From assembly GCF_001194135.2 (NCBI RefSeq), contig NC_068994.1, positions 2,914,519 through 2,978,518 of the forward strand: 64,000 nucleotides of DNA, read 5' to 3'. Below are positions 2,925 through 52,584 of this stretch, one piece after another. Made by a program: the position numbers and the translations under genes. The stretch comes from Octopus bimaculoides (taxonomy: Eukaryota). A model generated the notes under the pieces. It made no database searches. It was not told the DNA's origin and was given only the letters and a program-made list of their open reading frames with translations. Every line of letters starts with the position of its first letter. Position 1 is the stretch's first letter.

Positions 2925-3800
2925 TATATCATCATCATCATCATCATCATCATCACCATCATCATCATTTAACGTTCATTTTCCATGCTGGCTGGGGTTG
3001 GGCAGTGTGACTGAGGACTGACAAGCCAATAAGCTGCACCAGGCTCCAATCTGATCTGGCAAGGTTTCTACAGCTGGATGCCTTCCCTAATGCCAACCAC
3101 TCCAAGAGTGCAGTGGGTGCTTTTTATGTGCCACCAGAACAGGAGCTGGTCAGGTAGCACTGGCATCAACCACATTCAGATGGTGCTTTTTACATGCCAC
3201 CAGCACATCAGCCAGTTGGGAGGCACTGGCATTGATCACATTTGGATGGTCCTTTTTACATGCCACTGGCATGGACAGCTAGTCAGGCAGCACTGGCATC
3301 GACTCATGCTTGAATGGTGCTTATTATGTGCCACCAGCATAGTGCCAGTCAGGCAGCAGCATCACTGGCATTGGCCACAACTACGATTTCAATTTTGATT
3401 TCGATTTTACTTGATTCAATAGGTCTTGTCAAGTGTAGCATATTGCCCAACGATTCAAGGGTACTTTTAAACGGGCTGATTACGCAACAGTGGTATCAGC
3501 CATGGCTGTGATCTCACTTTACTTACCAGGTCTTCTCAATCACAGCATATCTCCAAAGGTCTCTCATTGCCTCTATGAGGCTCAACATTCAAAGGTCATG
3601 CTTCACCACCTCACCCCATGTCTTCCTGGGTTTCCCTCTTCCACAGGTTCCTTCCACTGTTAGGATGTGACACTTCTTCATACAGCTCTCCTCATCCATA
3701 TGTAGCACATGACCATACCAGTGCAGACATCTCTCTTGCATACTACATCTGATGCTTCTTATGTCCCTGTACATGGCTCGCACAGCTCTCACTGTATTTA
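2925..3800 (-). mobile_element. 3' fragment of an RTE-clade LINE (or partner SINE) with internal ~60-bp tandem repeats and (GAT)n tail
   Basis: Minus ORF 3589-3807 contains LHWYGHVLHM...GRGKPRKTWGEVVKHDL, typical of the RTE ORF C-terminus; reverse complement matches 54500-55130; (cat)n at 2928-2967. Confidence 0.75.
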
Positions 3801-3845: not shown

Positions 3846-3945
3846 CATACATACATACATACATACATACATACATACATACATACATACATACATACAT
3901 ACATACATACATACATACATACATACATACATACATGCATGCATA
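3846..3945. repeat. (TACA)n microsatellite
   Basis: More than 20 direct TACA units. Confidence 0.95.
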
Positions 3946-4253
3946 CATACATATATACATATAGATAAATATGGATGCATACATATATACAGATGCATAT
4001 GCATGCATACATATAAACAGATGCATATTTTTTTATGGCTGGGCTCCAATGCAGGCCATTGCAACAAAGTTCACCTACCACACTTCTCAATCCAGCATCA
4101 CTGCCTCAAGATCCTGGATATAATCCAGTCCAGTGTCTGCGATCAAGTTGTCAAAGTAAGTGTGACACCATTTTTCTCTTTTTACATCAAATTTCATATT
4201 ATTTCTTTTTCTTTGAATTATGATTTTATTATTATTATTATCATCATCATCAT

Positions 4254-4400: not shown

Positions 4401-4801
4401 TATTATAATATTTATTCTTGGCTGTTTTTCATGTTAAGTATTTAATATGAACCATATGTTAACAAGATCGCTATCATCTTTGGAAATGAGTATTCATTCG
4501 TTCTATCAACTAAACTACCAGAAAATTGAATTAGCACGTAAATGATCGAATATTCCACAGACATGTGTGCCCTTGACATAGCCCTCAGGCAAATATCAAT
4601 GTGACAGTGTGTAACACAAACTGGAACTTTGTATCATAAGTATAATCAATCCAATGGGTTTCTTCACATTTTCCATTGACCACCTGCCCAAGAGTAATAC
4701 TGTTGTAATGAATCTTGAGTTATTATTGCATAGTGAACCATTGTCCATATAAAAACATTTCAAGTAATTTTTTTTTCATCTTATCTGTGTATTTTTTACA
4801 G

Positions 4802-4958
4802 CATTAAGATAAGAATGTGGCAATGAGTCCTGCTGATCAAAAATGTTACGGTAGTATTGAAACATCAAACAACCTTAGTGAGACATTACCCTGGAACAAA
4901 GAATGGAACTATGTCTAGAATAAAGGAGACATTAAAAATCAAGCAATGGGAGCATCAG
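4802..4958 (+). pseudogene. Degenerate copy of the penultimate cytoplasmic exon (orphan unit)
   Basis: Intact cag acceptor and g|gtaat donor; H*DKNVAMSPADQKCYGSIETSNNLSETLPWNKEWNYV*NKGDIKNQAMGAS aligns to 965-1124, with stops at 4805 (TAA) and 4916 (TAG). Confidence 0.8.
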
Positions 4959-5102
4959 GTAATAATGAAATAAACAAAAAAATTCAAACAACAAATAAAA
5001 ATTTCCCTTAAGAAACATAACCTAGATATATTCAAATATTTGTCATGGAAACAAATTAAAACATCATTAAGTAGTTTCCCCTTATTCTTATATAATTTCC
5101 AG

Positions 5103-5182
5103 AATATAGCAAGTACCAGCCAAACATACCTCTGACACCAAAGAATGAACAAGAACAAGAAATCTATTCAGAGTTTATGTAG
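5103..5182 (+). pseudogene. Terminal exon copy of the orphan unit
   Basis: ttccag acceptor; (E)YSKYQPNIPLTPKNEQEQEIYSEFM*; 80 bp, open, paralogous to 1464-1543. Confidence 0.8.
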
Positions 5183-8029: not shown

Positions 8030-8313
8030 CAGGTGCCACTTAGAAAGCATCCAGTCCACACTGTAAAGTGGTTGGCATTTGGAAGGGCACCCAGCTGTGA
8101 AAACCTTGGCCAAACTGACCTCACTTGTGCCACGTAAAAAGTATTAAGTCCATTCTGTTGGGTCGTTGGTGTTAGGAAGGGCATCCAGCTGTAAAAATCT
8201 TGCCAAAACAGTCACAGATATCTGGTACAGGCTTCTGCCAGGCCGGCTCCTGTCAAACCATCCTACCCATGCTAGCATGGAAGGTGGACGTTAAACAATG
8301 ATGATGATGATGA
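8030..8313 (+). mobile_element. SINE/LINE-tail family C copy
   Basis: ggaagggcatccagctgt (twice)...cccatgctagcatggaaggtggacgttaaacaatgatgatgat tail; same family as 54950-55130. Confidence 0.7.
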
Positions 8314-9224
8314 ATAACTGAATTGAATTTTGTGTTTGTTATTTGAAGATAGAATGGTGAATACTTGCTTAAGTTTAAGCAAAAGAAAATGTACTTATAC
8401 ACAAAGTACTTAGATGAAGAGAGTATAAATGTGAGAACTCAGTAAGATGGTGCCTGTATCTCACTGATGCTTTAGTAAAGAATCACAATAGGATGTAGCC
8501 TTAATGAGAATACACCCTCTTCCATCTACTTCATACACAACATTTTATATAAACTCCTAAAATTTGAATTCTAATGTAAGCATACTTTGTGTCTTGCCTA
8601 TGGATTTTGTCTTGACTTCAAGTTAATTAGAACATAAATTCTCATCCTTATGTTGAGGTTGATGATATTCATCAAATTCACTCAGATCATTTTAAAAGGA
8701 ATCTATCTGTAGTTTAAATTACTATGAATTTCAAGAGATATAATTTATTTATTATGTGCTTTAGGTGTCCTTCACTTGACTAAGAGATAACTTTTGATGC
8801 AAAAATTCTGATAAAATAATAATGTAAGCAGTAAGTAAGTTAACACAACATTAACTATACTTTATTTCTGAACTACGTAAGCTATGTTAATATTTTGGTC
8901 ATTCAATAGTGTCATACCCACAACTCGGTGCTAATTTTGCATTAATTCATCTCAATTTCATTATTTCAAATTTAAAAAAAAATTCATTAAATTTTAGTTT
9001 CATTCACCACTTCATGACATAAATTTCCAAAATAGTTCCCAATATTATTTTTGCAAAAAGAGGGGCAACACGTATTTCCCAAATATTAATTTGATGCTAC
9101 AAATATTGTGGATAAATATCATAAATGTGAAGTGATCATTCATGTTGACTGTTTTAATCTAATAATAGAATTTCCATTTGTTTTTCAAGATACTGAGAGT
9201 CTGCAGGATTTGTGAAGAATCATA

Positions 9225-11621
9225 ATGACAAAAGAGAGTGGCTTATTCATCTGTCTACTACATACTTTACTACACTGTGTTCTAAGTGTAGATATCACTT
9301 ACCATGTCAACGAAGAAGATAGTCCTCACACTTACATAGGAAACATTGCTGCTGATTCTAACTTTTCTCAATCTCTCAAACATCATCAAGGAACTCCCAT
9401 TACATTTACACAGTTGCAAAGAACAATGTCAATGGGATCTCACTTATTCAATGTCACTAATTCTGGGAAACTATACACTACACACACACTTGATGCTGAG
9501 TCTCTATGCATTTACAAAAAAGAATGTTTTAAAATTGTCAAAGTAGCTGTTAGGAAAGAAGAAGCATTCATAAAAATATTAAAGATAAAGATAATAATTG
9601 ATGATATTAACGATAACCAACCAGAGTTTCCAGAAGATCAAATTAAATTAGAATTTGATGAAACTGAAGCAAAAGGTTCAACAAAATCAATACCAAATGC
9701 TGTGGATAAAGACATTGGTATTTTCAATTCTAACATCACATATGAACTGAAAGATAAAAGTAATACATTTATATTATCAATATTCAAAGAGTTTGATGGA
9801 ATGAAAATACTTAAAATAGCACTAGAAGGTAAGTTAGACAGAGAATTAAAAGACACTTATATGTTACAGTTAGTTGCAAAGGATAGTGGTTCTCCTCCCA
9901 AAGAAGATACTCTGAACATAGAGATATCTGTTATTGATGTCAATGATAATAGACCTATGTTTTCTCAGCAGATGTACAACATCACAATTAGTGATACACA
10001 TCATACATCTTCTCCTGTTTTTGTTTTATCAGCTACAGACTTAGATTCAGGTCAAAATGGTAATATCACATATAACTTTTATCAAAAAACAAGCTCTTAT
10101 CTCAAAACACATTTCAAACTGAAACCAGATGGAGAGATATTCCTAAATGAGGATTTTTACAGAAATAATCAACAAAAATATAAATTATATATTCAAGCCA
10201 AGGATAGAGGAAAACCATCTTTAAGTTCTTCAGCCACACTAATTATCAATGTAATAAGCAATCAAAATAATCTTCCAAATATAAACATAGATTTTGTATC
10301 ACCTTTAACAGTGAATTCTGCTGCTATTTCAGAAGCAAGTAAAATTGGGAGTTTTATAGCTTATGTTATGGTCACTGACACTGATAGTGGACCTAATGGA
10401 CAAATTAAATGCAATATTCACCATAAAATGTTCCAGCTTTCTAATATGGGGTCTAAAGAGTATAAAATATTAGTCAAAGAACCTCTTGACAGAGAAACTA
10501 TAGATCATTATGTTGTTTCTATTGAATGTCATGATATGGGATCACCTCCATTGAAGACTAAGAAACAGTTTTCTGTCAAAGTAACTGATGTCAATGATGT
10601 AGAACCACATTTTACCAAAGAGACATTCCAATTCCTCACCTATGAAAACCAGAAAGTTGACTTCCCTATTGGCTTCATCAATGCTACAGACCCTGATCTT
10701 GGAGATGGAGGCCAACTTACATATTCTATCATCAATGAGAACAAAAATGATAACATTCCTTTCCAACTGACAAAATATGGATTTATTTCTACATCACAAT
10801 CAATAGATCGAGAAGTAAAAGACATCTATAATTTACAGGTTTTAGTCAAAGATAATGGGACACCATCACTGAATAACACTGCCAATATTCTTATAGAGAT
10901 TCTAGATAAAAATGATAATGCTCCATATTTTATATTTCCTAATAATGATCCTTACAATCTAGATGTCCACTACCATCCACACAGTAAGAAGGACATCTCA
11001 ATTCTGAAAGCATCTGACAAAGATTCTGGAAACAATGCTTTCCTCACATATGGAATACTGAGATCCAATGATAAAAACCTGTTTACAGTGAACTCACACA
11101 CTGGTGTGTTATCTTTCTCTCGCACAGTTTACCAAAATGATGCAGGAACATATGAGCTGCAGTTTATAGTGAAAGACGGTGGTACTCCAGTTCAATCAGC
11201 AACAACTGCTATCATATTAACACTGTTTGTTAGTAATGATACATCTCCAATGTTAACTGCTGTCCACTCAAAGTCTGGTAACAACCTGAATATGACTTGG
11301 ATAATTATTATTGTAGCAGCAGCTGTAATACTATCTGTGGCCATTGTAGTGTCAATAACACTATGTGTTTTCAGATGTATTAATCATATTAATAATTCAC
11401 AAACAACAAAAAATAATCCAAAATTTCTTTCAAGGACTGAAATGAGGCAAATATTGTATCAGACTAACAATCCTGTAGCAATAACTAGAAATGCAGAAGA
11501 CATATTTAACAGAAATCTTCAGTCAATAAACCCCAAAACTTCCTATTACCCAGAGATGGAACAGCCAGCCAATGAATGGAAATTCTCAACAACACCTAGG
11601 CGATTGCCACCAGTTCCACAG
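9225..11621 (+). CDS. Protocadherin A, large exon: signal peptide, EC1-EC6, TM, juxtamembrane tail (799 codons)
   Basis: 810-aa ORF with LDAE/LDRE, DxNDNxPxF and A/TxDxD cadherin motifs, C-X5-C in EC1, TM WIIIIVAAAVILSVAIVVSITLCVF; donor ccacag|gtaaga at 11621/11622; acceptor tttttcaag at 9189. Confidence 0.95.
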
Positions 11622-13246: not shown

Positions 13247-13406
13247 CATTACAATAAGGATGTGGAAGAGAGTTCAACTGAACAAAAATGTTTTAATGCC
13301 AGCATTGTGACATCAAACAATCTAAATGATACACTACCCTCTCTTAAAGAACGGAACCGTGGGTGGAGTGAAAGTGACATTACATCTCAGAAATCTGGAG
13401 CATCAG
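13247..13406 (+). CDS. Protocadherin A penultimate cytoplasmic exon
   Basis: tgacag acceptor; HYNKDVEESSTEQKCFNASIVTSNNLNDTLPSLKERNRGWSESDITSQKSGAS; 160 bp; donor g|gtaatt. Confidence 0.88.
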
Positions 13407-13720
13407 GTAATTATATAGTAATTCAGAACATTCTAATTGAAATTATATAGTAATTCAGAACATTCTAATTTATGAAAGTAACAAATTTAATAAATAAATT
13501 CTGTAAATGAACTCCATAAATGAATTCAATAAATGAAATGAAATTTTATTATTTAGTAAAACAAAAAATAATTCAAAATAGCTTTTAGCATTTTAAAATA
13601 GTTAATGTTAGATTTTATTTCTAAGAAACAAAGAATCATATAGATTTAGTAAACAGTTTTACAAATGTACATGTCTCATGGAAAACAATACAGTAAACTA
13701 CGTTTTTATATATTTTTCAG

Positions 13721-13800
13721 AATACAGTAACTATCGACCAAACATACCTCCTACACCAAAACATGATCAAGAACAAGAAACTTATCTAGAGCCTGTATAG
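13721..13800 (+). CDS. Protocadherin A terminal exon
   Basis: tttttcag acceptor; (E)YSNYRPNIPPTPKHDQEQETYLEPV* ending TAG at 13798-13800. Confidence 0.88.
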
Positions 13801-27385: not shown

Positions 27386-29785
27386 ATGATAAGAAATATT
27401 CTTTCACTATATTTGCTAGACATGCTTCTGTTCTCTGTTGTGTCTTTAGACATTACCTACCATATCAATGAAGAAAACAACCCTCATGCCTACATAGGAG
27501 ATATTGCTGCTGATTCTAATATGTCACATTTTTTTAAACATCAACAACACAATCTTGTTACGTTTACACAATTACAAAGGAAGGTGTCAAGTGGCTCTCA
27601 TCTATTTAATGTCACCAACTTAGGGAAACTTTACACAACTCAGACACTGGATGCTGAGTCTTTGTGTACAATCAACAAAGAATGTTTTAAAATTGTTAGG
27701 ATAGCAGTTCGGAAAAGAAAAACTTATGTAAAGATTTTAAAAGTCAAAGTAATCATAAAAGACATCAATGATCATGGACCTGAGTTTCCAGAAAGTGAAA
27801 TAAACTTGCAATTTGATGAAAATGATCGGGAAGGAACTAAAAAGCCCATTCCAAATGCTATTGACAGAGATATTACCATTCAGAATTCTAGGATAGCTTA
27901 TGAACTGAAGGAAAATATAGATGACCCATTTTCATTGTCTCTTTCAAAAGACTATGATGGGACTTTCATACCTGAGATAGTTCTACAAGGTAAGTTGGAT
28001 AGAGAAAGAAAGAAACACTATATGTTAAAGCTGATTGCTAAAGATAATGGTATACCACCAAATGAAAATATTTTACATTTTCAGATATCTGTAACTGACT
28101 CTAATGATAATAAACCATTATTTTCTCAAAAAGTATATAACATTTCAATAATGAATAAACACCCCAAATCAAAACCAATTTTAGTTTTAGAAGCCACAGA
28201 TTTAGATTCAGGGACAAACGGAAAGATTGCCTTTAATTATAGTCCCAAAACACCAATTGAAATAAGAAAATATTTTGAGTTGAAAAAGGCATCTGGAGAA
28301 CTGTTTGTAAATGAGTACTTCAAAATAGATACCAAAAAATCTTACAAGCTGTTTGTTGAGGCTAAAGATGGAGGGAAACCTCCCTTAAGTTCAACAACAG
28401 TGATTTTAATTTCTAAAGAAAGCAATCATAATATTGCTCCAAAAATTGATATAGACTTTGTGTTTCCTTTGTCAGAAAGTTCGACTGCTCTTTTAGAAGA
28501 CATTAAAGTTGGTAGTTTTATTGCTTATGTCATAATTACTGACAATGATATCGAAGAAAATGGACAGATTAATTGTAATTTGGAACATGAAACCTTTGGA
28601 ATATTTGAAATGGGTTCACATGAATATAAAATGACCACAAAATGTCCTCTTGACAGAGAAACAAAAGATCGCTATGATATTGTACTTGTTTGCCAGGATA
28701 TGGGATTTCCACCACTCAAATCAGAAAAACAATTTTCTATTGAAGTACTTGATGTCAATGATGTAGAGCCACATTTTACCAAAGAGACATTCCAATTCCT
28801 CACCTATGAAAACCAGAAAGTTGACTTCCCTATTGGCTTCATTAATGCTACAGACCCTGATCTTGGAGATGGAGGCCAACTTACATATTCTATCATCAAT
28901 GATAACAACAATGATAACATTCCATTCCAACTGACAAAATATGGATTTATTTCTACATCACAACCAATAGATCGAGAAATGAAAGACATCTACAAGTTCC
29001 AGGTCTTAGTGAAAGATAATGGAACACCTTCACTGAATGACACTGCTAATATTGTTATTGAGATTCTAGATAAAAATGATAATGCTCCGTATTTTACGTT
29101 TCCTAATAATGACCCTTACAATCTAGATGTCCACTACCATCCACACAGTAAGAAGGACATCACAATTCTGAAAGCATCTGACAAAGACACTGGAAACAAT
29201 GCTTTCCTCACATATGGAATATTAAAATCTAACGATAAAAACATGCTTACAGTAAATTCTTACACTGGGGTATTATCATTCTCTCGTATAATTAATATAA
29301 ATGATGCTGGAACGTATGAGCTACAGTTCATGGTGAAAGACAGTGGTACTCCAGTTCAATCAGCAACAACTGTTATCATGCTAACACTGCATGTTAGTAA
29401 TGATACATTTCCAATGCAAGCTGCAACCCATCTCTTATCTGGCAATGACTTAAACATAATTTGGGTAATAATCATTGTTGCAGCAGCAGTAATATTATCT
29501 GTGGGTATTGTAGTTTGCTTAACAATGTGTGTTTTCAGATGTATTAATCACATTAAAAGTTCACCTTCAACTTCAGATAATCATAAAATCTTGACAGGCT
29601 CTAAGATGAGGTCAATGCCATATGAAACTAAAAATCCTGTTGCATTTACAAGAAATACAGAAGACACATATAACAGAAATTGTCAGACAATGAGCTCAAA
29701 AAGTCATTATTACCCTGAGATGGAAAAGACTATCAATGAATGCAAATTTTCAGCAACAGCTAGAAAACTTCCACCAATTCCACAG
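27386..29785 (+). CDS. Protocadherin B, large exon (800 codons)
   Basis: 811-aa ORF with six cadherin repeats, TM IWVIIIVAAAVILSVGIVVCLTMCVF, RKLPPIPQ then donor ccacag|gttggt; acceptor ttctttag at 27342. Confidence 0.95.
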
Positions 29786-33614: not shown

Positions 33615-33777
33615 CCTATTGATCAGCCAAGTAAGGAATCTTCTGATGAGCATGGAGAAAATATATCTACTAAGAGTATCAATTATATGAGTAATACATT
33701 GCCATGCCAATGGCCTTCTGAAAGTACCTGGGATGAAAGATATACAAGAAATTTCAGTGATATTTCTATTACATCAG
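33615..33777 (+). CDS. Protocadherin B penultimate cytoplasmic exon
   Basis: acttcag acceptor; PIDQPSKESSDEHGENISTKSINYMSNTLPCQWPSESTWDERYTRNFSDISITS; 163 bp, phase 0 to 1; donor tcag|gtaatt. Confidence 0.82.
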
Positions 33778-34380
33778 GTAATTTGTGAATTATATTCTAT
33801 TTTTAAAGAGTTCTGTATGATCTTTAGCATTTCTCTTAGTTGTAATTAATTTCAAATGATTAATGTGAAAATTGTAAAGTTCAAAATGAGTACTTTGACA
33901 TAATGATAGAGTTTGATACTACAAAAGTAGTATACAACTACATTAGATTCATAAGAATAAATTTTGTTTGGTACAAAGGTGATCTAACATATTATTTCAT
34001 ATTTGTTTATTCACAAACTCTCATTGCACTTTAACATCTTCTGCTGCCTGATAGGTGTTAGTATGTAAGAGAATAAGTTTACAAACCAGACTGCTAGCAC
34101 TCAGTACCAAAACATATGCGTATGTAATATATTACATATATTTTTATTTAATCTAAGGATTGACAGTATCCATTGATTCTGCCAGCTCTCATACACTGAT
34201 GAAACGGATGAGGCTAATACTCAGCTTGAACTTCTGTAGATTACTGTCAGAATACAGCAGTTCTGGGAAGAAAGAATTGCGTGAAATGATTTGTAGAAAA
34301 TTTTCTTAAAAATAATTGGCTAAAATATGTAATCCAATGATTTGAGCATAAGTTTTTTTATTTTATTTTATATTTTACAG

Positions 34381-34472
34381 AGTTTGATGAATCTAAACCA
34401 GATGTTCCTCCAAAACCAAATCTTCTACAAAACCAAGATACATATTTAGAGCCAATGTATCTAACAAAATAA
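34381..34472 (+). CDS. Protocadherin B terminal exon
   Basis: ttttacag acceptor; (E)FDESKPDVPPKPNLLQNQDTYLEPMYLTK*; keeps TYLEP. Confidence 0.85.
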
Positions 34473-38990: not shown

Positions 38991-41910
38991 ACATATCACT
39001 GGAAACATAGACCTTTTCTGGACTAAGGAGCACTATGAAACAATATTTCAAAATCAATGTTCACTTCCGAAAGTTTGTAATTAAAGGTTTGGATGGCACA
39101 GCAACTTATACAGAAAAATGGCAACAATTTTCAATTACAACATAAGGAAAAACAAGGTTTGAATCAAATTATAAAAATAGTATTAAAGATATGTTCTTCA
39201 ATTAAAGCTCTTGTGTCACATTTGCTGTGACAATTTGGTGTTTTATTCAACCATAACAATGCTTGGTTTGAGACTGTTGTAGCTAAATTACATGGAAAAA
39301 GAAAGCAGGAACAGCTTGCTCCAGCTGCATTTATAAAGACTTCTGCTGATATAACCAGTGCCGTGTTAAAGGATACTAATTTTTGATGACTGGTCTGGAT
39401 GACCACAATTTAGCTTGGTTGTATGAGAGTTGTTACAAAGCTTCTTTGTTAGCTCAACTTGGGTTTTAATTTTTACTGCTGTCTAGAGCTTCAGTTGATC
39501 ATATTGTTCTCCTCTACTTATTTCAATCTGGTATTTATTTAGTCAGTATTTTTTTATTGAGTTAACAAGTTATGTTTTGATGTAAAGGAATGCAACTTTG
39601 CTACACACATGCATATACAGTAGGCTTTAGCACAGTTTTTATCAACCAAACTTCACACACAAGACATATGATTACAGAAGATATTTCTCCATGGTGCTAT
39701 GCAGTGAGATTAAACTCAAAACCACATGATTGTGAAACAAATCCTTACCACAAAACTATATCTACATAATAGAGAAAGAAATAACCAATACAGAATTGGG
39801 GAATAAAACAAAAATTGAAAGCTCTTCAGATATTTGGAAATATTAAAGAGTATTTTATTACCAAAAAATATGTACCTTACTAATTTATTAATTTTTTTAT
39901 TTTTATTTTTTTCAGAACTCAGAAACTATGAACTAAGTTGAAAAGTTATGCAAACTTTTGCTTACAAATCAACTGTTTTGCCAAACAGAGGAATAAAATC
40001 TGAGATATCTTAACCCTAGCAATATTTATAAATAAATTCCCATACATTATTATTTCAGAATAACTTGCTCATTCTTATAAACTAGACATATAAGAATGTT
40101 ATTGTCAACAGTTTCTTTTTTTATTAAACTCCTCTCATTTTCTTAATTCTATTTTTTTAAATTGTGTAGTTTCATTTCAATATCACATTGTAGCATTTGC
40201 TAAATGTAAGTAAATGACTGAAACAAGTAAAAGAATAAAAGAGTATATATATATATATATACATACATACATACACACATAGACATACATATACATGCAT
40301 ATACATATATACGTACATAAATATATATATATATTTTTCATTTGTTAGGCCTTTTCCTAATACTGTAAAAATTGGAAATCTGGAGAAAGGAAAAAATTCC
40401 GATTTAGGCGAGGCAGCTATTCCGAAAATCCCCTTCACGGGAATTTCCCATTTATAGTCATTGCTGCGTTACAAAAGAAATAGTAGTAAACACACGTAAA
40501 TTTTCTTATCAAATATGTAAAAACATGGCATAAGTAACAAAATATCCATTTTATGAACATTTTCTAAAATTATTCTATGGATTATGTAAAATTTGAAACA
40601 TAACAAGACAAAGTAAACAAACTTGCATTGACAATATAATGTTATATTTATTGACTGCTTATATTGCGCGCATGTGTGTACGTACGTGCAACTGTATTTG
40701 TGTTAGTACCCACGCGTGAATGATTCTGTGTGTTAGCATGCAAGTGTAACCGATGTTTTTTGTGTGATTGTGTCTGTGACAATGTGTGAACGTTTTGTAA
40801 TACTGGCGGCAAAATGTTGCAAGGGACATAACTTGTCGCGCACCTGAACTGTTTTATTCAAAATAGTAAAGTTTGTGAGTTGTTTTATAACCCACGAGGA
40901 ATAAATTACAAGTGCCGTTTAGAAGCTACCCCTTCCGAGAGAGGTATTAAAGTACTTTTGTCTTACAAGGTGAAATGCAGAACTGTAAGCATTTTCGTTT
41001 TCCCATGACATACGAACTTCTCCAAATTAACGAATTTCATTATTTAAATTTTGCCGATTCAGACCAAACTAGTTTTCGCGGACTGAGGCTTTTTATTGTT
41101 ACAAAAGGTGAGAAATTTTAAACTCTAACTTTAAAGCATGCTGCATATATTTTGATATATGTTGCAGCCAGGAAAAGGGATCGATTTCGATCGGCTACAG
41201 TCCCAGAAAATTCAAGGTCTTGTGCTTGTTTGAAAAAAAAATAATTAATGGGGGGGGGGGATGAGGTGTTTTATTGCATTTTTGACTGAGACAATATATC
41301 TTTTACAAAAGCGAAACCATATGTTCGGCAATTTCCGTAAAACATTTTTATTTCTTGATTTTCTTTTACATACACAGACCTATAAATATATGCAAATATA
41401 CATACACTCTGGCACACATGCATACACAACTATACGTACATGCACATGAACATAAGCCATTCGTGAAAACAAAACGTATATTTATTTATGTATGTATATG
41501 TGAGTGTTTGTGTAAATGAAAGACAATGAGTGTGTGTGCGACCGTCTTTTTCACTCTTCAGTTGCAAAAAATAAACATTAAAGAAAACAAAAAATGTTTA
41601 CGAAAGTTGCTGAACGTATAGTTTTACTTTCTCGAGACCAATACCGATTGATTGCCTCAAAAACTATATCAGCAAAGTAAATAGCCTTCCCTAAATGCAT
41701 TAAAAGCATTATAAAATATAATTTGATCACTATTTCAGAAAATTATCGCCGTCCTTTCATATGAAAGACCAATTTAGCTGGGGCAAAATGATTAAGCCAA
41801 GATAAGGTACATTTTCCTCTTCAATTTTCCAGAATTACATTTGAAAAGTGACCTATGCACATCAATATCCATCCTTAAATATCACAAAAATCAGAAATGC
41901 AACAAAACTT

Positions 41911-42105
41911 GGCGGAGGTAAAGAATGTGTACATCACCCGTTTTCAGATATCTATGTTTTCGATATAGGAGAATACGATTTTGCCCAAAAATCACGTTTT
42001 CAAAATTTTAATTTTCCTTTAAGAAACATTCAATATCTCTTCCACCCCTCCGTTTTACCCACCCATCACCGAAAACTGGTGGTGTACACATTCTTTACCT
42101 CCGCC
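41911..42105. mobile_element. Small MITE-like element with ~35-bp terminal inverted repeats
   Basis: ggcggaggtaaagaatgtgtacatcacccgttttt versus aaaactggtggtgtacacattctttacctccgcc. Confidence 0.7.
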
Positions 42106-43012
42106 CCAAGATTTAAAATATCTAGGTCAAATGGAAGAGGATCATGGAAAAATAGCACATGAAATTAATGAAACTGAACTAAATAAAAAAACAAAACTCA
42201 AAATATCTTCTATAGCTTCTTCATGATCTGCTGTAGTGGCTCTCTTCCCGATATATTTACATAGAGACGAAGTCATTGAAATTAGGCATTACTCATTTTA
42301 CCCCATTTTTAAACATCACTTTTGAAACTTGAAAATTATCAAATTAGACATTAGTGTGGAAAAAAAATTTACTTGGAATCCCACTGAAAAAAGGATGTTA
42401 ATTGTTTCACACCAAAAATTATCCAAATATTTTATTAGTAACCTCAATTACAATCAGGTCAAATTGAGGAAAAATTTCTTGAAAAGAGAAAAATACCTGT
42501 CATCTACGCTCAACCTAACTCAACTTCAGCAACAACTATATTGACCAATTTCTACTCCTTAAGATGATGCAACAGTAAAAAATATTGATGGTATTACTTG
42601 CAATATAATGATTTCAAACAGGTAGGGGAAAAAAATCCGAAGTTACTCATTTTGTCCGCTCTACAATTATTTATAAAGATAATTTAAGGTTAGGCATACC
42701 TACACAAGTAATTCAATTTCGTCATAACTTTCAGAAAAATGGCTTTTTTTAAATGAAATTTCTACTAATACACATCAGATAGCTTAAACCCTGATTATAT
42801 TGAAATTTGATGTGAAATGGAAAAAAATTCTGTGGGCGGGGAGAGGGTTTCAGAAAATTCACCTGAGTCGGATGGGTACTTTTTCTGAAATTTTTCTACA
42901 AATACCTTTCAGAATGTTAAGATTACAATTATATTGGAATTTAATATGGAAAAATAAATGGTGAACATGCACGCACACACACACATACTGACACACATCT
43001 TAATTTTTTTCT

Positions 43013-43318
43013 AGCCTGCGCCCTTAACCACTACGCCATATACCCAAGGGCATATGGCATAGTGGTTAAGGGTGCAGGCTACTAACCCCAAGATTCTGAG
43101 TTTGATTCCAGGCAGTGACCTGAATAATAATAATAATAACAACATCGAAAAATACCTTAGGAATGAGAACCCATGTTTGAAATTTCCCCAAGACACCTGA
43201 TGAAGGCTGGAGGATATATCAGCCGAAACATTGTGTTGACAACAAAGAAGATGAGAACAAATATCTGTCAAATGTATATAATGTATATAATTTCTCATCT
43301 CTTAAATATAGAACTGTA
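43013..43318 (+). mobile_element. Second copy of the tRNA-headed Penelope-tailed repeat, preceded by a short inverted head duplication
   Basis: 43013-43046 is the reverse complement of 43048-43080; (aat)n; same tail ending cttaaatatagaactgta. Confidence 0.8.
43192..43237 (+). ncRNA. Minimal type I hammerhead ribozyme motif (atypical core)
   Basis: gacac CTGATGA a ggctg[gaggatatat]cagcc GAAA c att gtgtt: stem I gacac/gtgtt, stem II ggctg/cagcc, loopless stem III, AUU as putative NUH. Confidence 0.55.
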
Positions 43319-44294
43319 GTAATAATTGCATTAACAAACAGATTATTGTCAACTTACTGAAACCTAAGATTGAACCATGTTTAGAATTCATTAAATTTAA
43401 CAGTTTCAATGCAGCCATTCATCTATCTGCAAATACTTTATAGAAGTGTGTTTAAAAGGTAAAGAAAATAGCTATTTCAAATTAAAGAGTAATTCAAAAC
43501 AATAGTTTTTGTTTCCTTTTTATATGCATTTCTATTATACAACAGATATATTGCCTGTCAGGCAAACATTTTTCTTAATACCAAACACTTTTACCATCAA
43601 ATACATCAAGGTTTGGTAAACACACAATAATTTAGTTGTTGAATCTAGTGAAAAGACCAAAACCCCAACAAATTGCACAATGTCTGAGCTAAAAATAAAT
43701 TTCCTACTTTTCAAATGATAGGATTGTCATGACTAACACTTTTCATCATAGTTTTTTGGCTACAATTGATCTAATAGTAAACAACAGAAACATTTCCTTG
43801 AACATGATGAGGAGAAATCTTCTGAAGGGCTGTGTTATCTCCTTAATATAGCAATAAATCTCATCCTATCATCTTAGATTAATAAAGTATTAAAAGTGTC
43901 ATTTGTGTAAATGTTGGTGTATCACATATGTTAGTGCATGTTCATATTTTTCACACATAATTAGTTTTACTTTTTTAATGTGATTCATTATACACATCAC
44001 CCTCTTAGAACTGAGGCTTTGTTGTAGCCAAGAGTCCAATCCCATTGGCAGTGTTGTGTTAGTTTGATTCATCTCTCTACTTATATCAGGAATCACTTTG
44101 TGCTCCATCTCTGCTTATCCACGTCAGGGATCATATTTTTGTAAAGATCTCTTCTTAAGTCCAGTTTGTATTGTTATTTGTATGTGTAGTCATGCATACT
44201 ATAGAGAGTGCCTGCTATGGAGGATAAAGAGCAACATCTAAGTTCAGTTTTCAACCTTAATTGTATACTTTTTTTTTTTTTTTTACTTTTTTAC

Positions 44295-44622
44295 TAGTTT
44301 CAGTCATTTGACTGCGGCCATGCTGGAGCACCGCCTTTAGTCGAGAAAATCGACCCCAGGACTTATTCTTTGTAAGCCTAGTACTTATTATATCGGTCTC
44401 TTTTTGCCGAACCGCTAAGTTACGGAGACATAAACACCAACATCGGTTGTCAAGCGATGTTTGTTGGTGGGGGGGGGGACAAACACAGACACAAACACAC
44501 ACACATATATATATATACATATATACGACGGGCTTCTTTCAGTTTCCGTCTACCAAATCCACTCACAAGGCTTTGGTCGGCCCGAGGCTATAGTAGAAGA
44601 CACTTGCCCAAAGTGCCACGCA
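44295..44622 (-). mobile_element. SINE family B copy, near full length
   Basis: Minus strand ...ccacatggttccgggttcagtcccactgcgtggcactttgggcaagtgtcttctactatagcctcggg...; CpG-rich. Confidence 0.8.
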
Positions 44623-44699
44623 GTGGGACTGAACCCGGAACCATGTGGTTGGTAAGCAAACATCAGTTACATACATGGGATTAATATATTCCTACAGGT

Positions 44700-45330
44700 G
44701 ATACTAAAACGAAAAGGCAATGTAATATTTCCATTAAAGCAGACGATACTAAATGATACGGCAATTTAATATTTCCATTAAAGCAGACGATATTAAAATA
44801 ATATGGCAATTTAATATTTCCATTAAAGCAGACGATACTAAAACAATATGGCAATTTAATATTTTCATTAAAGCAGACGATATCAAAACAATATGGAAAT
44901 TTAATATTTCTATTAAAGCAGACGATAGTAAAACAATATGGCAGTTTAATATTTCCATTGAAGCAGACGATACTAAAAGAATATGGTAATTTAATATTTC
45001 CATTAAAGGAAACGATATTAAAACAATAGACAATTTAATATTTTTATTAAAGCAGACGATACTAAAACAATATGGTAATTTCCATTAAAGAAAACGATAT
45101 TAAAACAATATAACAGTTTAATATTTCCATTAAAACAGACGATATTAAAACAAAATGGCAATTTAATATTTCCATTAAAGCAGACGATATTAAAACAGTA
45201 TAACAATTTAATATTTCCATTAAAGCAGACGATATTAAAACAAAATGGCAATTTAATATTTCCTTTAAAGCAGACGATATTAAAACAGTATAACAATTTA
45301 ATATTTCCATTAAAGCAGACGACACTAAAA
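44700..45330. repeat. 45-bp minisatellite, about 13-14 copies
   Basis: Unit ggcaatttaatatttccattaaagcagacgatactaaaacaatat recurs at 44-45-bp spacing; produces the 15-aa periodic ORFs in the track. Confidence 0.95.
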
Positions 45331-46959
45331 CTGCTCAAAAGTTGGGAATGGAAGTACTTCGAATTTTTTTAAGCAAAACTATATTTAAACACCGTTAATG
45401 AATGTTAGTAAAAAAACAAGTAACGAAAAACTTATGGAGGTTCTCTGAATTTCTTTTTAGCACTTTATAAAGACTTTTTTTTTTTCGATTTATGAATAAA
45501 ACTTTTTTTGATTATCAAACTATTAAATATTAACAAAACGTTGTTAAAAAAAGAAAAAAACTCATGGAAGTCCTTCGAAAAATTTCTTTTTAGCATTTAA
45601 TAAAGAATCTCCCCGCCCCCCTTTTTTTTAGATTATCAAGCATTGTGTTAGAAATTAACAAAACTCATACGATGTATCAGAAATGAATATCATTACTCAC
45701 CCTTTGCTTTTACATGTAAATATCCATATTGAAAACATTTTCCTAAATAAATTTTGCGACGATATAAAATTAGAAATCTAAGGAGACAAATTTTACGAGC
45801 CTTCATTGTCAGCGTTTCTCTCAGCAATTGCGAACGGAACGCAGACGACAAATGTTGCAAGGGAGATGACTCTTGGTTTTTTTTTTAGATTCCAGATCAT
45901 TTTTAAATATATGTGTATTTTTATTAATATTTAGCAGAGGGTTTTCGTGCGTTTAAGTACCAATGTATGAAATTCTCGGTGCTTGAGTCACTCTGTTACT
46001 TTTGTTAAATATTAATAAAACTATACGTGTGTTCATATTCTGTGTTCTATTTTTCTGTCTGCATCACCATACCTTCCATTCCCTCTGTTCCCCTGTTTGT
46101 TTCAGTCATTTGACTGCGGTTATGCTGGGGCACCACCTTTAATATATATATATATAATATGTGTGTGTGTATAGGTATATATTCTTTTATTTGTTTCAGT
46201 CGTTTGACTGTGGCCATGCTAGAGCACTGACTTAAAGGGTTTTAGTCAAATTAAGTTTAAAATGTCGATTTTGTTTCATCCTTTCTAAAGATACTAACTT
46301 TTTTTTTTAAATTTCTGCTTGCACAATCCACATATCCACTTCCCCATATTGTTTTCACATTTTAGCACAAGATCAGCAATTTGGGGGAAGGAGTAAGTTG
46401 ATTGCATCGACCCCAGCGCTCAACTGGTATTTATTTTATCTACCCTAAAAGGATGAATGGCAAGGTCAACCTCAGCGGATGCTGCTAAGCATTTTGCCAA
46501 ACATAAAAACGATTCTGCCAGCTCACAGCCTTTGTCCACTCTTCCATACTAAATACACTTTGGCATTGCTATAAATATTTTTTTATCCACTTGTTGGTGA
46601 TAAAAGTTTCTGTAACTACAAAAACACTGCTCCCAGAATTCAATGTATGTGTGAGGGTGTAGAAATTTCTGTCTTTGGTACGCACATGCACATTTAGCTT
46701 ACCAGGATTGGTCAGACTCTAACTCTCTGATAGAAAAGCTTGAGGTATGTTGTTAATTGAATTTGTGGCAAGCATTTGCTCAAACTTTCTACAATCAGCA
46801 TTTCCAAAAGGTGTGCTCATCTTAAACAAACCTTCATCACTGTAAAAAAAAATCATCTGTGTGGGTAGTCTAATGGCTATAACATTAACCATTAGACTGA
46901 AGAATCCACTAAAATATATGTGAGTGGGTGTGTATGAGTATTATATGTATGTGTGTGGT

Positions 46960-47255
46960 GCAGGCATAGCTGTGTGGTTGGAAGTTTTCTTCCCAACCAT
47001 GTGGCTCCAGGTTCACTCCCAATATGTGGCACCGTGAGTAAATGTCTTCTGCTATAGCCTTGGGCTGACAAAAGCCTTGTTAGTGGATTTGGTAGCTGGA
47101 AACTGAAAGAAGCCAGCCGTGTGTTTGTATCTATGTTTGTTTCCCACCACCTCTTGACAACCGGTGTTGGTGTATTTACATTCCATATTTCAGCAAAAGA
47201 GACTAATAGATTAAGTACTAGGCTTAAAAAAGAAGACAATAAGTACTGGGGTTAG
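46960..47255 (+). mobile_element. SINE family B copy
   Basis: tggtgcaggcatagctgtgtggtt...ccatgtggctccaggttcactccc...gtggatttggtagctggaaactgaaagaagcc. Confidence 0.7.
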
Positions 47256-47399
47256 TTAGTTCAATTATTTTAAAATTCTATCTCCAAGCTAGGTTTTCTA
47301 GAGAATTTTTTGTAACTGCTTTATTAATGTTACATTTCTTCAGATTATAGTGTCTGTCACAATTCACTGATCATTATTCTGTTTACTTTTTTAGCTTGT

Positions 47400-48835
47400 G
47401 GTACAATAATTAATAATGATATTGGACACAATGGAGATGTTACATTCTCTTATTAAAAGACACCTTGACAAAGAAACATCTGTTGTATATCATGACATGG
47501 AATCATCTCCATTGAAGACTAAGAAACAGTTTTCTGTCAAAGTAACTGATGTCAACGATGTAGAACCACATTTTACCAAAGAGACATTCCAATTCCTCAC
47601 CTATGAAAACCAGAAAGTTGACTTCCCTATTGGCTTCATCAATGCTACAGACCCTGATCTTGGAGATGGAGGCCAACTTACATATTCCATCATCAATGAT
47701 AACAACAATGATAACATTCCTTTCCAACTGACAAAATATGGATTTATTTCTACATCACAATCAATAGATCGAGAAATGAAAGACATCTATAAGTTCAAGG
47801 TCTTAGTGAAAGATAATGGAACACCTTCTCTCAATGACACTGCCAATATTGTTATTGAGATTCTAGATAAAAACGATAATGCTCCCTATTTCATCTTTCC
47901 TAATAATGACCCTTACAATCTAGATGTCCACTACCATCCACACAGTAAGAAGGACATCACAATTCTGAAAGCATCTGACAAAGACACTGGAAACAATGCT
48001 TTCCTCACATATGGAATACTGAAATCCATCATCATCATCATTTCATGTCTGTTTTCCATGCTGGCATGGGTTGCACAGTTTGACAGGAGCTGTCCAGACT
48101 CCATTTGTCTGTTTTGGCAAGATTTCTACAGCTGGATGTCCTACTTAGTACCAGCCACTTTACAGAGTGTGCTGGGTGTTGCACTTACACGCTGATGTGC
48201 TATCTTTCGCGGACAATTTACCAAAATGTTTCAGAAACATATGAGCTGACCTTAACAAGTGATGTAATAGCATTACTAGCACAATAGAACATGGTATTGA
48301 CTTATAACACCATTTACTCTACTTTGTAATATATTATGGTTGCATAACAAAATACCATGTTCTTAAAGTCATTAATATTAGCTGGAGTTTATAGTGGTAC
48401 TCCAGTTCAATCAGCAACAGCTGCTATCATACTAACATTGTTTGTTAGTAATGATACATCTCCAATGTTGACTGCTGTCCCATTCCAGTCTGGTAACAAC
48501 CTGAATATGACTTGGATAATTATCATTGTAGCAGCAGCTGTAATACTATCTGTGGCTATTGTAGTGTCCATAACACTGTGTATTTTTAGATGTATTAATC
48601 ACAAAATAACTCACCTACAACAACAGATAATCCAAACTTTCTCTCTCAGACTGAGATGAGACAATTACTGTATCAGACTAACAATCCTGTTGCAATAACG
48701 AGAAATGCAGAAGAGATATTTAACCGAAATCTTCAGACAATAAAATCTAAAAGTCAGTTTTTTCTGGAGATGGAACAGACACCAGATGAGTGGAAATTCT
48801 CCACAACACAAAGGAGACTTCCACCTGTGCCTCAG
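47400..48835 (+). pseudogene. Protocadherin C pseudogene: 5'-deleted large exon (part of EC4 to tail)
   Basis: No EC1-EC3 found upstream; deleted EC4 remnant at 47400-47505; EC5-6 near-identical to paralogs; SINE insertion at ~48025, further non-homologous sequence ~48250-48390, frameshift near 48600; donor cctcag|gtaaat at 48835. Confidence 0.88.
48025..48193 (-). mobile_element. Family C repeat fragment inserted into EC6 of pseudogene C
   Basis: atcatcatcatcatttcatgtctgttttccatgctggcatgggttg is the reverse complement of the family C tail at ~55085-55130. Confidence 0.75.
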
Positions 48836-49151
48836 GTAAATATTATTTTATGTCACTGATATCCTTTTGATTTTAAATGCAAAAGTATTTTATTGATTAT
48901 TCACATATGTTCAAACATTTCTATAAAATATCAACTTCAGAAACTCATGTGTATGAGCTGTTTTATTCCTTTGCTTAAAATTTATAGTCTATCTGCGACT
49001 TTCTGAATTAACTATTCTTTTTTGTTTAGTGATAGTTAAACAGTTACAATGCTCATTATAGAAATATAATACTCTTTATATAAAGACTGTTTTATTAGGT
49101 GTGATCTAGACTTGTATTGATATAATTTTTTATCTTTTCTATAATCAACTG

Positions 49152-49299
49152 AAATATGATTTTATCCATAGTTGAGAAGGTCACATCAGTTCCAGCATGT
49201 CTAACTACAACAGTGACTCCTTAACATCCCAAAAGGACAGAGAAGCTAGCAAGAGTAATGGCAAGACTAAACCATATGATGAGATACCTGCAGAACCAG
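49152..49299 (+). pseudogene. Inactivated penultimate exon of unit C
   Basis: Homologous to 58383-58521, but the acceptor reads caactg instead of caacag and an in-frame TGA replaces CAA. Confidence 0.8.
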
Positions 49300-49463
49300 G
49301 TAACTTTTATTGAAACATAACATATAAATGTAATTACCTTTATTACTGTAGGACAATATATAATGTTATGCTTAGTGTAATATAAGATCAATGTTTCTAT
49401 CTTTATATCTTGGAATTGTTATATTGAAATGTAATTTGTGTTTGTATATTTGATATTTTGCAG

Positions 49464-49543
49464 AATATACCAATGACAATCCAGTTGCAGCCACAATACT
49501 AAAGGGACAACAAATACAAGATACCTATCTACAGCCAACATAG
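49464..49543 (+). pseudogene. Terminal exon of unit C (open, intact splice site)
   Basis: ttttgcag acceptor; (E)YTNDNPVAATILKGQQIQDTYLQPT*; same peptide as 58687-58766. Confidence 0.8.
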
Positions 49544-50432
49544 TAGATGTTCCATGACTATTGTTAAATGATTCTCTCACACACCAAATCTTATACAATA
49601 CTTTATATTCATATAAAAATATCAACTCTTTGTTTCTTTCACACATCACACATAAATGGCCTTACATTGGTTTTTGTTATGACCCCTGATTTACATCTCT
49701 GATACCTCAAATACTAGAAATGCCCTTATCTATATTATCATTGATGACAGTATATTGGGCTCATTGAATGTTATATTTAATTTTCTAAGCTCCAGTTTTA
49801 GTGTGATTCTAATTTCTATATTTACATCTACCATTTGTAGCATAAAACAACATAAAAGTTTTGCTATTATATCATTTAACTAATGATATTAATCTGGAGG
49901 TTCTGCAGAATGTTGTCATATTTTGTAGTATCCACAGCATCTGAGAGAAGAGTAATAATAAATTTAGCATAATATGAAGTAAAGTGAAATATTACATGAA
50001 AAATGTTTACATCTAGTGTTGAATTTCGATTGAGTAAATCTTATGAATACTCCCCAAATTAAATACATTCCAACACTAAAGATTTCTAATTTGTCCATTC
50101 ACTTAAAATGTGGCTATACGAATATTTCATAGAAATAATAAAATACAGTTTTTATGCAGCAAAAGCCATTATGAATAATTTACATTTACTGTTGTTGCCT
50201 AATAGCTGTTGTTTAGATTTCTTTTTGCCACGTTTGTATCAACAATGTCTATTTCTTTAACTAACATTGAATTTTTTATTGTTACAAGAATCTTTTTATT
50301 GCTAGGATATACTACAATCAGTTTAATATTAAAAAATACTTAATAACAGAACTAAATAGGATACTCCTCGATTAATCACACTATCTATAAAATATATGAA
50401 AGATAATTACACATAATTCATCAAACAGCTTC

Positions 50433-50875
50433 TGTTTAACATGAATTCTCTTGTTTGATGTGTTTTGTGTGACACAGACAACATTGCAGTAATTTCCTAT
50501 TGGATGAGAGAGATTTTCTAGATTTCTTTCAATATTGAAAGTGAGGCTGATAGCTTTTTTCTTTGTTCATCATACACACAATTGTGTGTGTGTGTGTGGA
50601 GGACATAGAGTTGTAACTAGCACACACCAGCATCTGGCTAACATCTCACCTCCCACTACATACAGCAACTGTCACACTATTATATCAGCAGTTACACAGG
50701 AACACTACCACCACCACTACAACAACAGCAGCAGCAGTAACATAGGAACACTACTATAACAGCAGCAGTACCACTATAATACCACTTCAGCAGCAGCAGC
50801 AGTTAGAGTGGAACACTACAGCAGGATACACATCATCCATCACACACAACTACAGTGAAGGATTAAACAATGCAG
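50433..50875 (+). promoter_or_regulatory. Putative promoter plus non-coding first exon of gene D
   Basis: Reverse CCAAT (cctattgg ~50497), CA/CAG-rich exon ending gattaaacaatgcag|gtaagt; near-identical to 59575-60013. Confidence 0.6.
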
Positions 50876-52584
50876 GTAAGTCTCTCTCTTTATTATCTTT
50901 TTATATTTTCATTTCCATTATAATATTTATATTGTATGTGTTTCTAATGTAAGACAGTGTAACACTACAATGTAAAATGTTCACCATGTTGTGTGTGTGT
51001 ATATACACACAGGGACTTGGACAGTAGAGGATAGAGAGATCAAGCCATCACTTCCGCCATTAATAACAGCAACATTGGTGGTAGTAGTGGTAGTAGTGGT
51101 GGTGGTGGTGGTAGTATTAGTAGTAGTAGTTTGTCCCCTTATTTTTAAAACACATATATACACACCTTTATTTGTAAAAACCATACGAATCTGTCCACAA
51201 TCAGAGAATTTACCTTCAATTAATTCCATACTGTCTTCTAAATATTCTTTTAAACATTTTCGTAAATAGTATTGGTGTAATATAGTTTAAATAGGAGACA
51301 TGTGTTTCATTACATGTCATAAAACATATATTGATCTGCCAATAATATAGAGTTGAGTTTTATGAATTCGTTTCTCTGTGTTTGGATTATAACATTTCTT
51401 TAATAAATATAATCTCTCTTAAAAAGGTTTACATGATTAGATATTTACAATAATAATAAGAATACGAAGCATCTTATTTTACCAGATTTAATTATGAAAG
51501 AAACATTGTGTGGAGATTTACATCCAAGATGGTGGAAGACAGTGGATGATAGAAATTAACCTGGAAATAACAATTTGAAATAGAATTAAGATGAATGTTT
51601 AATGTCACATTTTCTGTGCTATATTTTTATCTCATAAGAATTTTGGCTGACTTTCTGCTGTATATTGGTTTGCAAGAACCGTTTCTTTTCCTATTAATTG
51701 TTGAACCTTTCAGTATTTATTTTTTATTGGAACTACTATTTGTTTTTTGCTAATCTGTTGTAAAATAAAAGTTTCTTGTAGTTCAGTTCACTTCCTTCAT
51801 TTGAAACTGTCTCCTTTAATTTGTAAGCATTCTAATATTTATTTTAACTCTACAAGTCTTAATTTCATTTAAAGAAAGCAATTAAAGATTTGATTGATAT
51901 TACGGTCAGAATGTAGGCCAAGATAATCCAAAGACCTCATGTGCAGCAACGAAACAATGCTTACATTGTAATATATTTCACTTCAGTGGCCTTCATGTCC
52001 TTCCTTACAAACAGAAAGACAAACTAAAATTTCAAAACAAAATACAAGGAAAATTGTAAAATTATTGATAGATTAATATGTGAATTGTTCATTGATTATT
52101 ACTGGAGTTCAATTTTAATGCATTTTTGATAGATTATTGTATGTAGCTGACGTTTCATTAACTAGTCTCTCATATCTTTAATTATATATCTTCTAGTCTC
52201 TACTAGAAATCCTCCTCTGCAATACCTATTTATTTTGAATACATGTCTACATGTCCATAATTTCACTATTTATGCACATGCATTGCTATTTAAAACTCTT
52301 GAATTTAAAATCTCTAACAAACATCATACTTCCACCAGAAACTCACATTAACATCAACATTATTGTTACATGTTTAATGTTCCATTATATTGTATTAAAT
52401 ACTTTTCATTTTGTATATGTAGTAATCACTAATTGTTCAGTGCCAACATACAGATGCAAATATTGCAGTAAGAATGGTAGAAAGCCTGTGTTATTGCAAC
52501 TACTTGGCTGTTTAGAAATTAGATTTCATTTTCCTTTATTATTTATACAATCCTTTTCTCTTTTTAATATTGTCTCTGATATTC

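Follow-up and report, generated by a model that had tools for sequence, protein, structure and literature searches.

Concerted evolution of a membrane-proximal cadherin module among tandem protocadherin genes of Octopus bimaculoides, probably by interlocus gene conversion

In the clustered protocadherins (Pcdhs) of vertebrates, gene conversion is restricted to certain domains (Noonan et al. 2004, Genome Res 14:354, as summarised in PMC4978886). In the clusters of Xenopus, mouse, and zebrafish, the synonymous divergence (dS) is highest in the second and third extracellular cadherin repeats (EC2/EC3) and lowest in EC5/EC6 (Table 2 of PMC4978886). The vertebrate proteins form an antiparallel trans dimer through EC1-EC4 and a promiscuous cis dimer through EC5-EC6/EC6 (PMC7811963). 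For cephalopods, "homogenization through gene conversion" is invoked for the lineage-specific clustering of paralogues (Albertin et al. 2015, as cited in PMC6339937; Albertin et al. 2022, PMC9068888). Here, we describe a 64-kb stretch of the Octopus bimaculoides genome (NCBI RefSeq assembly GCF_001194135.2, contig NC_068994.1, positions 2,914,519 to 2,978,518 of the forward strand), referred to as the window. It is part of a tandem protocadherin array and contains five paralogous copies, A, B, C, D, and E, all on the + strand and head-to-tail. A segment from the EC4-EC5 linker into EC6 coalesces more recently than the upstream part of the same exon, evolves in concert within genomes, and begins at the same sharp 5' boundary in two octopod families. 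It is very probable that the near identity of this segment is the result of concerted evolution by interlocus gene conversion between paralogues, restricted to this module.

Exon 1 of these genes is a single open reading frame that encodes all six cadherin repeats and one transmembrane helix and has a canonical donor at its end. The limits of domains were set from the DxNDxxP linkers, found at residues 127, 238, 455, and 561 of gene A, and from Pfam. The homogenised tract and the gap that interrupts it have the following coordinates in the window.

10586-11067, + strand: core tract of gene A, residues 454-614, comprising the EC4-EC5 linker, all of EC5, and the first ~45 residues of EC6
11068-11335, + strand: extension of the tract in gene A, comprising the C-terminal half of EC6 and the transmembrane helix, common to the C/D/E type but not to B
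28750-29231, + strand: homogenised tract of gene B
47547-48028, + strand: homogenised tract of copy C
56783-57014, + strand: first half of the tract in gene D, ended by an assembly gap
57015-57718, no strand: assembly gap of 704 N in exon 1 of gene D, hiding the remainder of EC5, all of EC6, and the beginning of the transmembrane helix

An initial annotation of the window had reported four nearly identical copies of this segment. All four exist; the 45-mer that it quoted is found at 10596, 28760, 47557, and 56793 with at most one mismatch, against a chance expectation of 0. The ungapped identity of the tract is 93.8% for A-B, 94.4% for A-C, 96.1% for B-C, 97.4% for A-D, and 98.3% for both B-D and C-D, whereas the 482 bp directly upstream of the tract are 59-65% identical between copies. 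"Nearly identical" describes the first 230 bp well (10586-10814), which are nearly invariant among 10 Octopus copies, but not the remainder, which is 87-100% identical and mosaic. The end given for the D copy, 57014, is not biological; it is the point where the 704-N gap opens within the tract.

Both edges of the tract are visible in pairwise comparisons. Between A and B, a sliding window showed ~65% identity up to 10552, 86-99% at 10553-11051, and 70-80% beyond. Their identity at the third codon positions is 88% in the tract vs 63% over the whole exon. High-identity segments were evaluated by a maximal-segment column shuffle in the spirit of GENECONV, with 2000 replicates. The best A-B segment corresponds to residues 454-611 of A, and none of the 2000 column permutations reached it, with all positions or with third positions only. 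The segments for A-D and B-D were likewise unmatched in 2000 shuffles, also with third positions only. The 5' end corresponds to the EC4-EC5 linker DVNDVEP (residues 455-461), and in the site table, the 35 bp that precede 10586 hold 17 subfamily-diagnostic sites; such sites are almost absent from the 230 bp that follow.

The 3' edge depends on the pair. It is at residue 611 for pairs with B, in both O. bimaculoides and O. sinensis, and in the A-D pairs of O. vulgaris and Argonauta hians, it coincides with the end of the helix that spans the membrane (residues 715-719). A and C are 92-93% identical at 11175-11335. In the C-terminal half of EC6, the proportion of synonymous differences (pS) is 0.08-0.11 between A and the D/E orthologues and 0.39 between A and B. 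The originally proposed extent, EC5-EC6, is imprecise for B, whose C-terminal half of EC6 is diverged (pS 0.39-0.47); for A against the C/D/E type, the tract continues through EC6 into the transmembrane helix. The homology between A and B stops at the exon border. Their similarity is thus bounded on both sides and ends at an exon border, indicating that it is not a product of crossover. At 10815-10934 within the tract, A shares one haplotype with O. vulgaris A1, and B, C, D, and E carry a second, which suggests several overlapping events. The GC content at third codon positions is 0.26-0.34 in EC5, 0.34-0.47 in the N-terminal part of EC6, and 0.20-0.26 in EC2-EC4, with amino-acid composition uncontrolled; the raised values are weakly suggestive of GC-biased conversion.

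Synonymous divergence is not uniform along the exon, although uniformity had been named in the initial annotation as the outcome that would speak against homogenisation. By the Nei-Gojobori method, dS between A, B, and D is 1.0-2.9 in EC1-EC4 (the same range for A-B alone), while it is 0.25 for A-B, 0.13 for A-D, and 0.11 for B-D in the tract. The same pattern is present in three other species. The ratio of nonsynonymous divergence (dN) to dS is alike in the tract and in EC1-EC4, 0.2-0.5, and dN and dS drop together, which argues for a more recent common ancestor of the tract rather than stronger constraint on the protein. In EC2-EC3, the dN/dS of 0.15-0.46, a gene-wide and not a site-level value, shows no gene-wide sign of positive selection. 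The control with orthologues consists of one clean pair, B, the D pair being cut by the gap. Between B of the window and B of O. sinensis, dS is 0.04 in EC1, 0.08 in EC2, 0.06 in EC3, 0.03 in EC4, 0.12 in EC5, and 0.05 in EC6. This even distribution excludes both a low mutation rate in the tract and constraint on its synonymous sites.

The comparison was extended to other octopods. Two loci of O. sinensis (L002 and L003) are colinear with 21-40 kb and 49.5-64 kb of the window at 91-96% identity and contain no N. The other loci are from O. vulgaris (L001 and L004) and A. hians (L005-L007). The comparison set includes 13 complete exon-1 sequences, and trees were constructed by the neighbour-joining method with 200 bootstrap replicates. 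A step in third-position identity is observed at residues 442-471 in all within-genome pairs, and all four species (O. bimaculoides, O. sinensis, O. vulgaris, and A. hians) have the 5' edge of the best segment at residues 449-454.

Trees made per domain, as had been suggested for checking the proposed concerted evolution, conflict with each other. In the tree of EC2-EC4, the A-like clade and the D/E-like clade are each supported at 100% and the monophyly of Argonauta at 0%. In the tree of the tract, the Argonauta copies (A-like, D-like, and one other) are monophyletic at 100% and the subfamily clades are supported at 0%. Argonauta is also monophyletic in the tree of the C-terminal half of EC6 (97%). 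The tract thus groups by genome and EC2-EC4 by subfamily, and the claim of concerted evolution is borne out. In the tract tree, B of the window pairs with B of O. sinensis and A of the window with O. vulgaris A1.

Divergence values agree with the trees. Between the A-like and D-like genes of Argonauta, pS is 0.04-0.09 in the tract and 0.63-0.66 in EC2-EC4, and between Octopus and Argonauta, the pS of the tract is 0.20-0.27. Among 48 proteins, the tract is 95.4% identical between subfamilies within Argonauta vs 89.6% within a subfamily between genera. The order is reversed in EC2-EC4, with 51.6% between subfamilies in Argonauta vs 72.6% within a subfamily between genera. Species-specific states in the tract, including synonymous ones, are common to paralogues of different subfamilies, indicating that sequence moved between paralogues after the split of the genera. 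Within D/E, the pS of the tract is 0.02-0.05.

The divergence of EC2-EC4 that had been set against the homogenised EC5-EC6 is true between subfamilies. Members of one subfamily are also homogenised in EC4 and in part of EC1, and only EC2-EC3 escape. The within-subfamily dS is 0.33-1.48 in EC2, 0.24-1.00 in EC3, 0.00-0.13 in EC5, and 0.03-0.12 in EC6. The homogeneity within subfamilies spans EC4 and also the cytoplasmic part, and EC1 is a mosaic. Between D and E, a block of EC1 is 98-100% identical over ~270 bp (~55500-55770 vs 62920-63190); EC2 is 61-76% identical. The peptide of this EC1 block recurs in members of other subfamilies, with species-specific residues in Argonauta, indicating that EC1 is exchanged, too. 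Distant subfamilies outside the window (P0040, P0042, P0055, and P0060) share an almost identical block at the EC3-EC4 junction, …SPPLSSIATVLVNVINQHNNPPSIDIDYVSAI…SFIAYVMVTDNDVG…, in three Octopus species, and the remainder of these proteins is ~50% identical. The position of homogenised modules may differ from one subfamily to another.

Copy C, a chimeric pseudogene, provides direct evidence of recombination inside the tract. It is A-type at all diagnostic sites at the end of EC4, and D-type from the equivalent of ~10815 in A through the transmembrane helix, the cytoplasmic part, and exons 2-3. It carries a 366-bp replacement at 48029-48394 that contains a dispersed repeat, and the acceptor of its exon 2 is changed from AG to TG. 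The chimera indicates that unequal exchange contributes beside bounded conversion. A gene model of O. sinensis with 463 residues ends at the place matching copy C, so the C fragment may predate the split of the species.

Interlocus gene conversion would act here as repeated non-reciprocal transfer of sequence between paralogues, probably with occasional unequal crossing-over. The exchanged module would extend from the EC4-EC5 linker to the middle of EC6 in subfamily B, or to the end of the transmembrane helix in the A and D/E types. Within a subfamily, the exchange would reach EC4, the cytoplasmic part, and part of EC1, with EC2-EC3 always escaping. The boundary may persist because homogenisation of EC1-EC4 would erase recognition diversity and be selected against; the strong divergence upstream may also block the extension of heteroduplexes. 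The shared EC5-EC6 module may have one role in every isoform, for example lateral (cis) association like that of the vertebrate clustered protocadherins.

Several observations weigh against this explanation. Conversion is deduced from single reference assemblies, and no event was directly observed. The assembly of the window is unreliable exactly here, with the N gap in D and with gene models of neighbouring paralogues that skip the module. The tracts of A, B, and D in Octopus still hold subfamily structure, B of the window being nearest to B of O. sinensis. The pS of 0.17 between the A and B tracts is higher than the divergence between O. bimaculoides and O. sinensis (0.06-0.11), although lower than the value between genera. 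It follows that the A, B, and D subfamilies of Octopus exchange sequence slowly, and no exchange between them is demonstrable since the split of O. bimaculoides and O. sinensis. Downstream, C and D share ~1.7 kb (49203-50939 vs 58425-60077) at 89-99% identity, exons 2 and 3 included, as the result of a segmental duplication or a crossover and not of bounded conversion.

One alternative is that unequal crossing-over and segmental duplication, with breakpoints inside the already similar EC5-EC6, are the main homogenising force and generate chimeric genes rather than short conversion tracts. Copy C is such a chimera, D-type to at least 1.7 kb downstream at 98-99% identity, and the homogeneity within subfamilies runs from EC4 to the gene end. 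A gene may also have been lost by unequal exchange, as an orphan exon-2-like relic remains at 4797-5173. However, the tracts shared between subfamilies have an edge at either end (residues 454-611 for A-B and ~450-719 for A-D), and the subfamily-specific cytoplasmic tails and introns are untouched. A single crossover cannot yield such a structure, and it is unlikely that crossing-over is the main force. A recent duplication followed by fast divergence of the EC2-EC4 protein sequence was ruled out, because the synonymous sites of these repeats are saturated (pS ~0.6) and because the subfamilies are older than the split between Octopus and Argonauta.

Selection on the nucleotide sequence itself could also keep synonymous sites similar, if the tract formed double-stranded RNA for the heavy adenosine-to-inosine (A-to-I) editing of cephalopod neural transcripts or contained an exonic regulatory element. 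Editing is reportedly enriched in octopus protocadherins (bioRxiv 10.1101/714394), and the protein identity between distant subfamilies is 69% in EC5 and 67% in EC6 vs 56% in EC2 and 54% in EC3. This modest extra conservation of protein cannot account for 94-98% nucleotide identity. Besides, the dS between the B orthologues is not lowered (0.12 in EC5 vs 0.08 in EC2), and the pS of the tract between genera is normal, with substitutions common to paralogues of the same genome. RNA folding of the tract was no better than that of shuffled sequences (z +0.89, and z +0.67 for an upstream control). A relaxed CTCF-like motif matched only once in the window, at 54505; this match is no more than chance would give and does not fall in the tract. 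Selection of this kind is very improbable. An artefact of short-read assembly, in which copies were collapsed or several were filled with one consensus, is harder still to credit. The gap in D opens inside the tract, precisely this module is missing from the O. bimaculoides gene models of neighbouring paralogues, the fused RefSeq model at chromosome scale keeps the gap-skipping junction, and exact runs up to 131 bp are common to copies. Yet the sequences of A, B, and C are contiguous, and the differences among them, at 4-6% of sites, have a structure that makes phylogenetic sense. The same step in identity, moreover, is found in the chromosome-scale records of O. sinensis, O. vulgaris, and A. 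hians, including the two N-free loci of O. sinensis; the possibility of an artefact, raised in the initial annotation, is thus contradicted by the other assemblies. This step, together with the pairing of B with O. sinensis B and of A with O. vulgaris A1, indicates that the assembled tracts are authentic locus-specific sequences. Gene conversion between paralogues is still the explanation we favour for the near identity.

The genes in the window are arranged as follows.

9225-11621, + strand: exon 1 of gene A, encoding a signal peptide, EC1-EC6, the transmembrane helix, and the proximal cytoplasmic part, with the donor CAG/GTAAGA
13247-13797, + strand: exons 2 (~13247-13414) and 3 (~13672-13797) of gene A, found by tblastn with the C-terminal tails of relatives
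27386-29785, + strand: exon 1 of gene B
33615-34469, + strand: exons 2 (33615-33776) and 3 (34350-34469) of gene B, found by tblastn with the C-terminal tails of relatives
47479-48835, + strand: copy C, a 5'-truncated chimeric pseudogene, with exons 2 and 3 at 49152-49298 and 49463-49540
55422-58039, + strand: exon 1 of gene D, broken by the N gap, with exons 2 and 3 at 58383-58520 and 58686-58763
62842-64000, + strand: exon 1 of gene E, EC1 to EC4 only, the end of the window preceding the E tract

A, B, C, and D each have their own separate, small 3' exons 2 and 3 downstream. Gene A matches the Pfam family Cadherin with 243 bits in five stretches, in addition to an N-terminal Cadherin_2, and the top database matches are octopod proteins named "protocadherin beta-15-like". 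The product of exon 1 of gene B appeared, by reading, identical to the matching part of O. bimaculoides UniProt A0A0L8I275. Gene B has the NEENN variant of A0A0L8I275, and O. sinensis has NEENS. The window opens within an intron of another A-like gene, whose exons 2 and 3 are at 965-1141 and 1460-1540. The orphan relic between this gene and A is a degenerate copy of exon 2/exon 3 that matches 963-1150 at 62% identity and lacks a neighbouring exon 1; a paralogue lost at this position may be its source.

The window is AT-rich, with a GC content of ~32%. It contains a (CATA)n microsatellite of 29 units at 3846-3961 and a second assembly gap of 10 N at 53173-53182. Just upstream of C, at 44700-45331, ~14 copies of a 45-bp unit are arrayed in tandem with 85% matches, and this array is translated as coding in a fused RefSeq model. 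A dispersed repeat of ~350 bp with internal tandem units of 65-66 bp, probably a SINE-like element (SINE, short interspersed element), is present at 2929-3358 on the + strand and at 8127-8330, 48032-48178, and 54786-55139 on the - strand. Exon 1 of A and exon 1 of D are each preceded by a copy at a distance of a few hundred bases, and another copy is within the insertion of C. Copies are also found in the O. vulgaris and O. sinensis loci, and weaker partial matches are seen in two A. hians loci.

The sequence orthologous to the gap in D is 484 bp long in O. sinensis (L003, 11594-12077). In the RefSeq model at chromosome scale, P0122, the gap is skipped by the same junction as in the older P0125, so P0122 does not provide an independent check of the gap. 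Public gene models of O. bimaculoides (P0017, P0049, P0122, and P0125) skip the module or fuse adjacent genes; a 5049-residue "protocadherin Fat 4, partial" and an 1874-residue "Fat 4-like", for example, join B, C, D, and later genes. Two fused RefSeq models hold B, C, and D in that order. The interval from the B side to the D side is 9.3 kb in the window (~40215-49509) vs 25.7 kb in O. sinensis (CM016872.1, 60474585-60500290), which may reflect a collapse or deletion in the window or insertions in O. sinensis. The module breaks short-read assemblies and gives fused or truncated gene models in O. bimaculoides. Family counts and trees for O. bimaculoides are probably skewed by it, and so are octopus protocadherin counts and trees drawn from whole-length alignments. 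Phylogenies are therefore better built on EC2-EC3.

The array resembles the vertebrate clusters in several respects. Both have large tandem exons that each encode six cadherin repeats, and in both, the C-terminal ectodomains are homogenised and EC2-EC3 keep the phylogenetic signal. The vertebrate parallel drawn in the initial annotation is supported, as the octopus dS is likewise highest in EC2/EC3 and lowest in EC5/EC6, in accordance with PMC4978886. Unlike the vertebrate clusters, the octopus array consists of whole-gene duplications with their own 3' exons and without shared constant exons, in agreement with PMC9068888. The octopus tract is also different in its sharp 5' edge at the EC4-EC5 linker, common to two octopod families, and in the exchange of the module between subfamilies whose EC2-EC4 are only ~53% identical as protein. 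The octopus pattern arose independently of the vertebrate one, in an independent expansion. The Albertin papers deal with the same family and the same species, and their statements on conversion, in the parts available, concern whole genes or whole trees. In the cephalopod literature covered here, which is incomplete, no report was found of confinement to EC5-EC6, of a boundary, or of incongruence between domain trees across genera. Gene conversion has been proposed broadly for cephalopods, and domain restriction is well established in vertebrates; within the literature covered, domain restriction in cephalopods appears to be new.

The combination of variable outer repeats and shared membrane-proximal repeats in octopus, known from sequence alone, matches the functional split of the vertebrate proteins. 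By this analogy, octopods might have reached independently a two-part design, with a diversified outer recognition unit that has an EC2-EC3 core and a common lateral-association unit of EC5-EC6, extended in some types to the transmembrane helix, through which any isoform could pair with any other. The maintenance of a shared membrane-proximal interface, proposed in the initial annotation as the reason for the homogenisation, would likewise follow by analogy with vertebrates. The boundary at the EC4-EC5 linker would then have been held by selection since before the split of Octopus and Argonauta. We regard this functional proposal as tentative and rather doubtful at present. By sequence, gene A is about equally close to delta-type protocadherins (6vg1 and protocadherin-10, 6vg4) and to gamma-B4 (6e6b). 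The closest solved structures include non-clustered delta-type protocadherins besides gamma-B4, a point unfavourable to the functional rationale. No EC5-EC6 cis interface is known for the delta type, which is unfavourable in the same way.

If the proposal is true, the map of conversion would be a genomic read-out of the map of functional domains, and mixed cis complexes would be predicted among all A, B, and D/E members that share the module. The question behind it is whether the protocadherin expansion of octopus works like the neuronal self-recognition code of vertebrates. The break between the two modules in octopus is located where the split between trans and cis interactions is located in vertebrates, and it gives indirect genomic evidence for a similar molecular logic.

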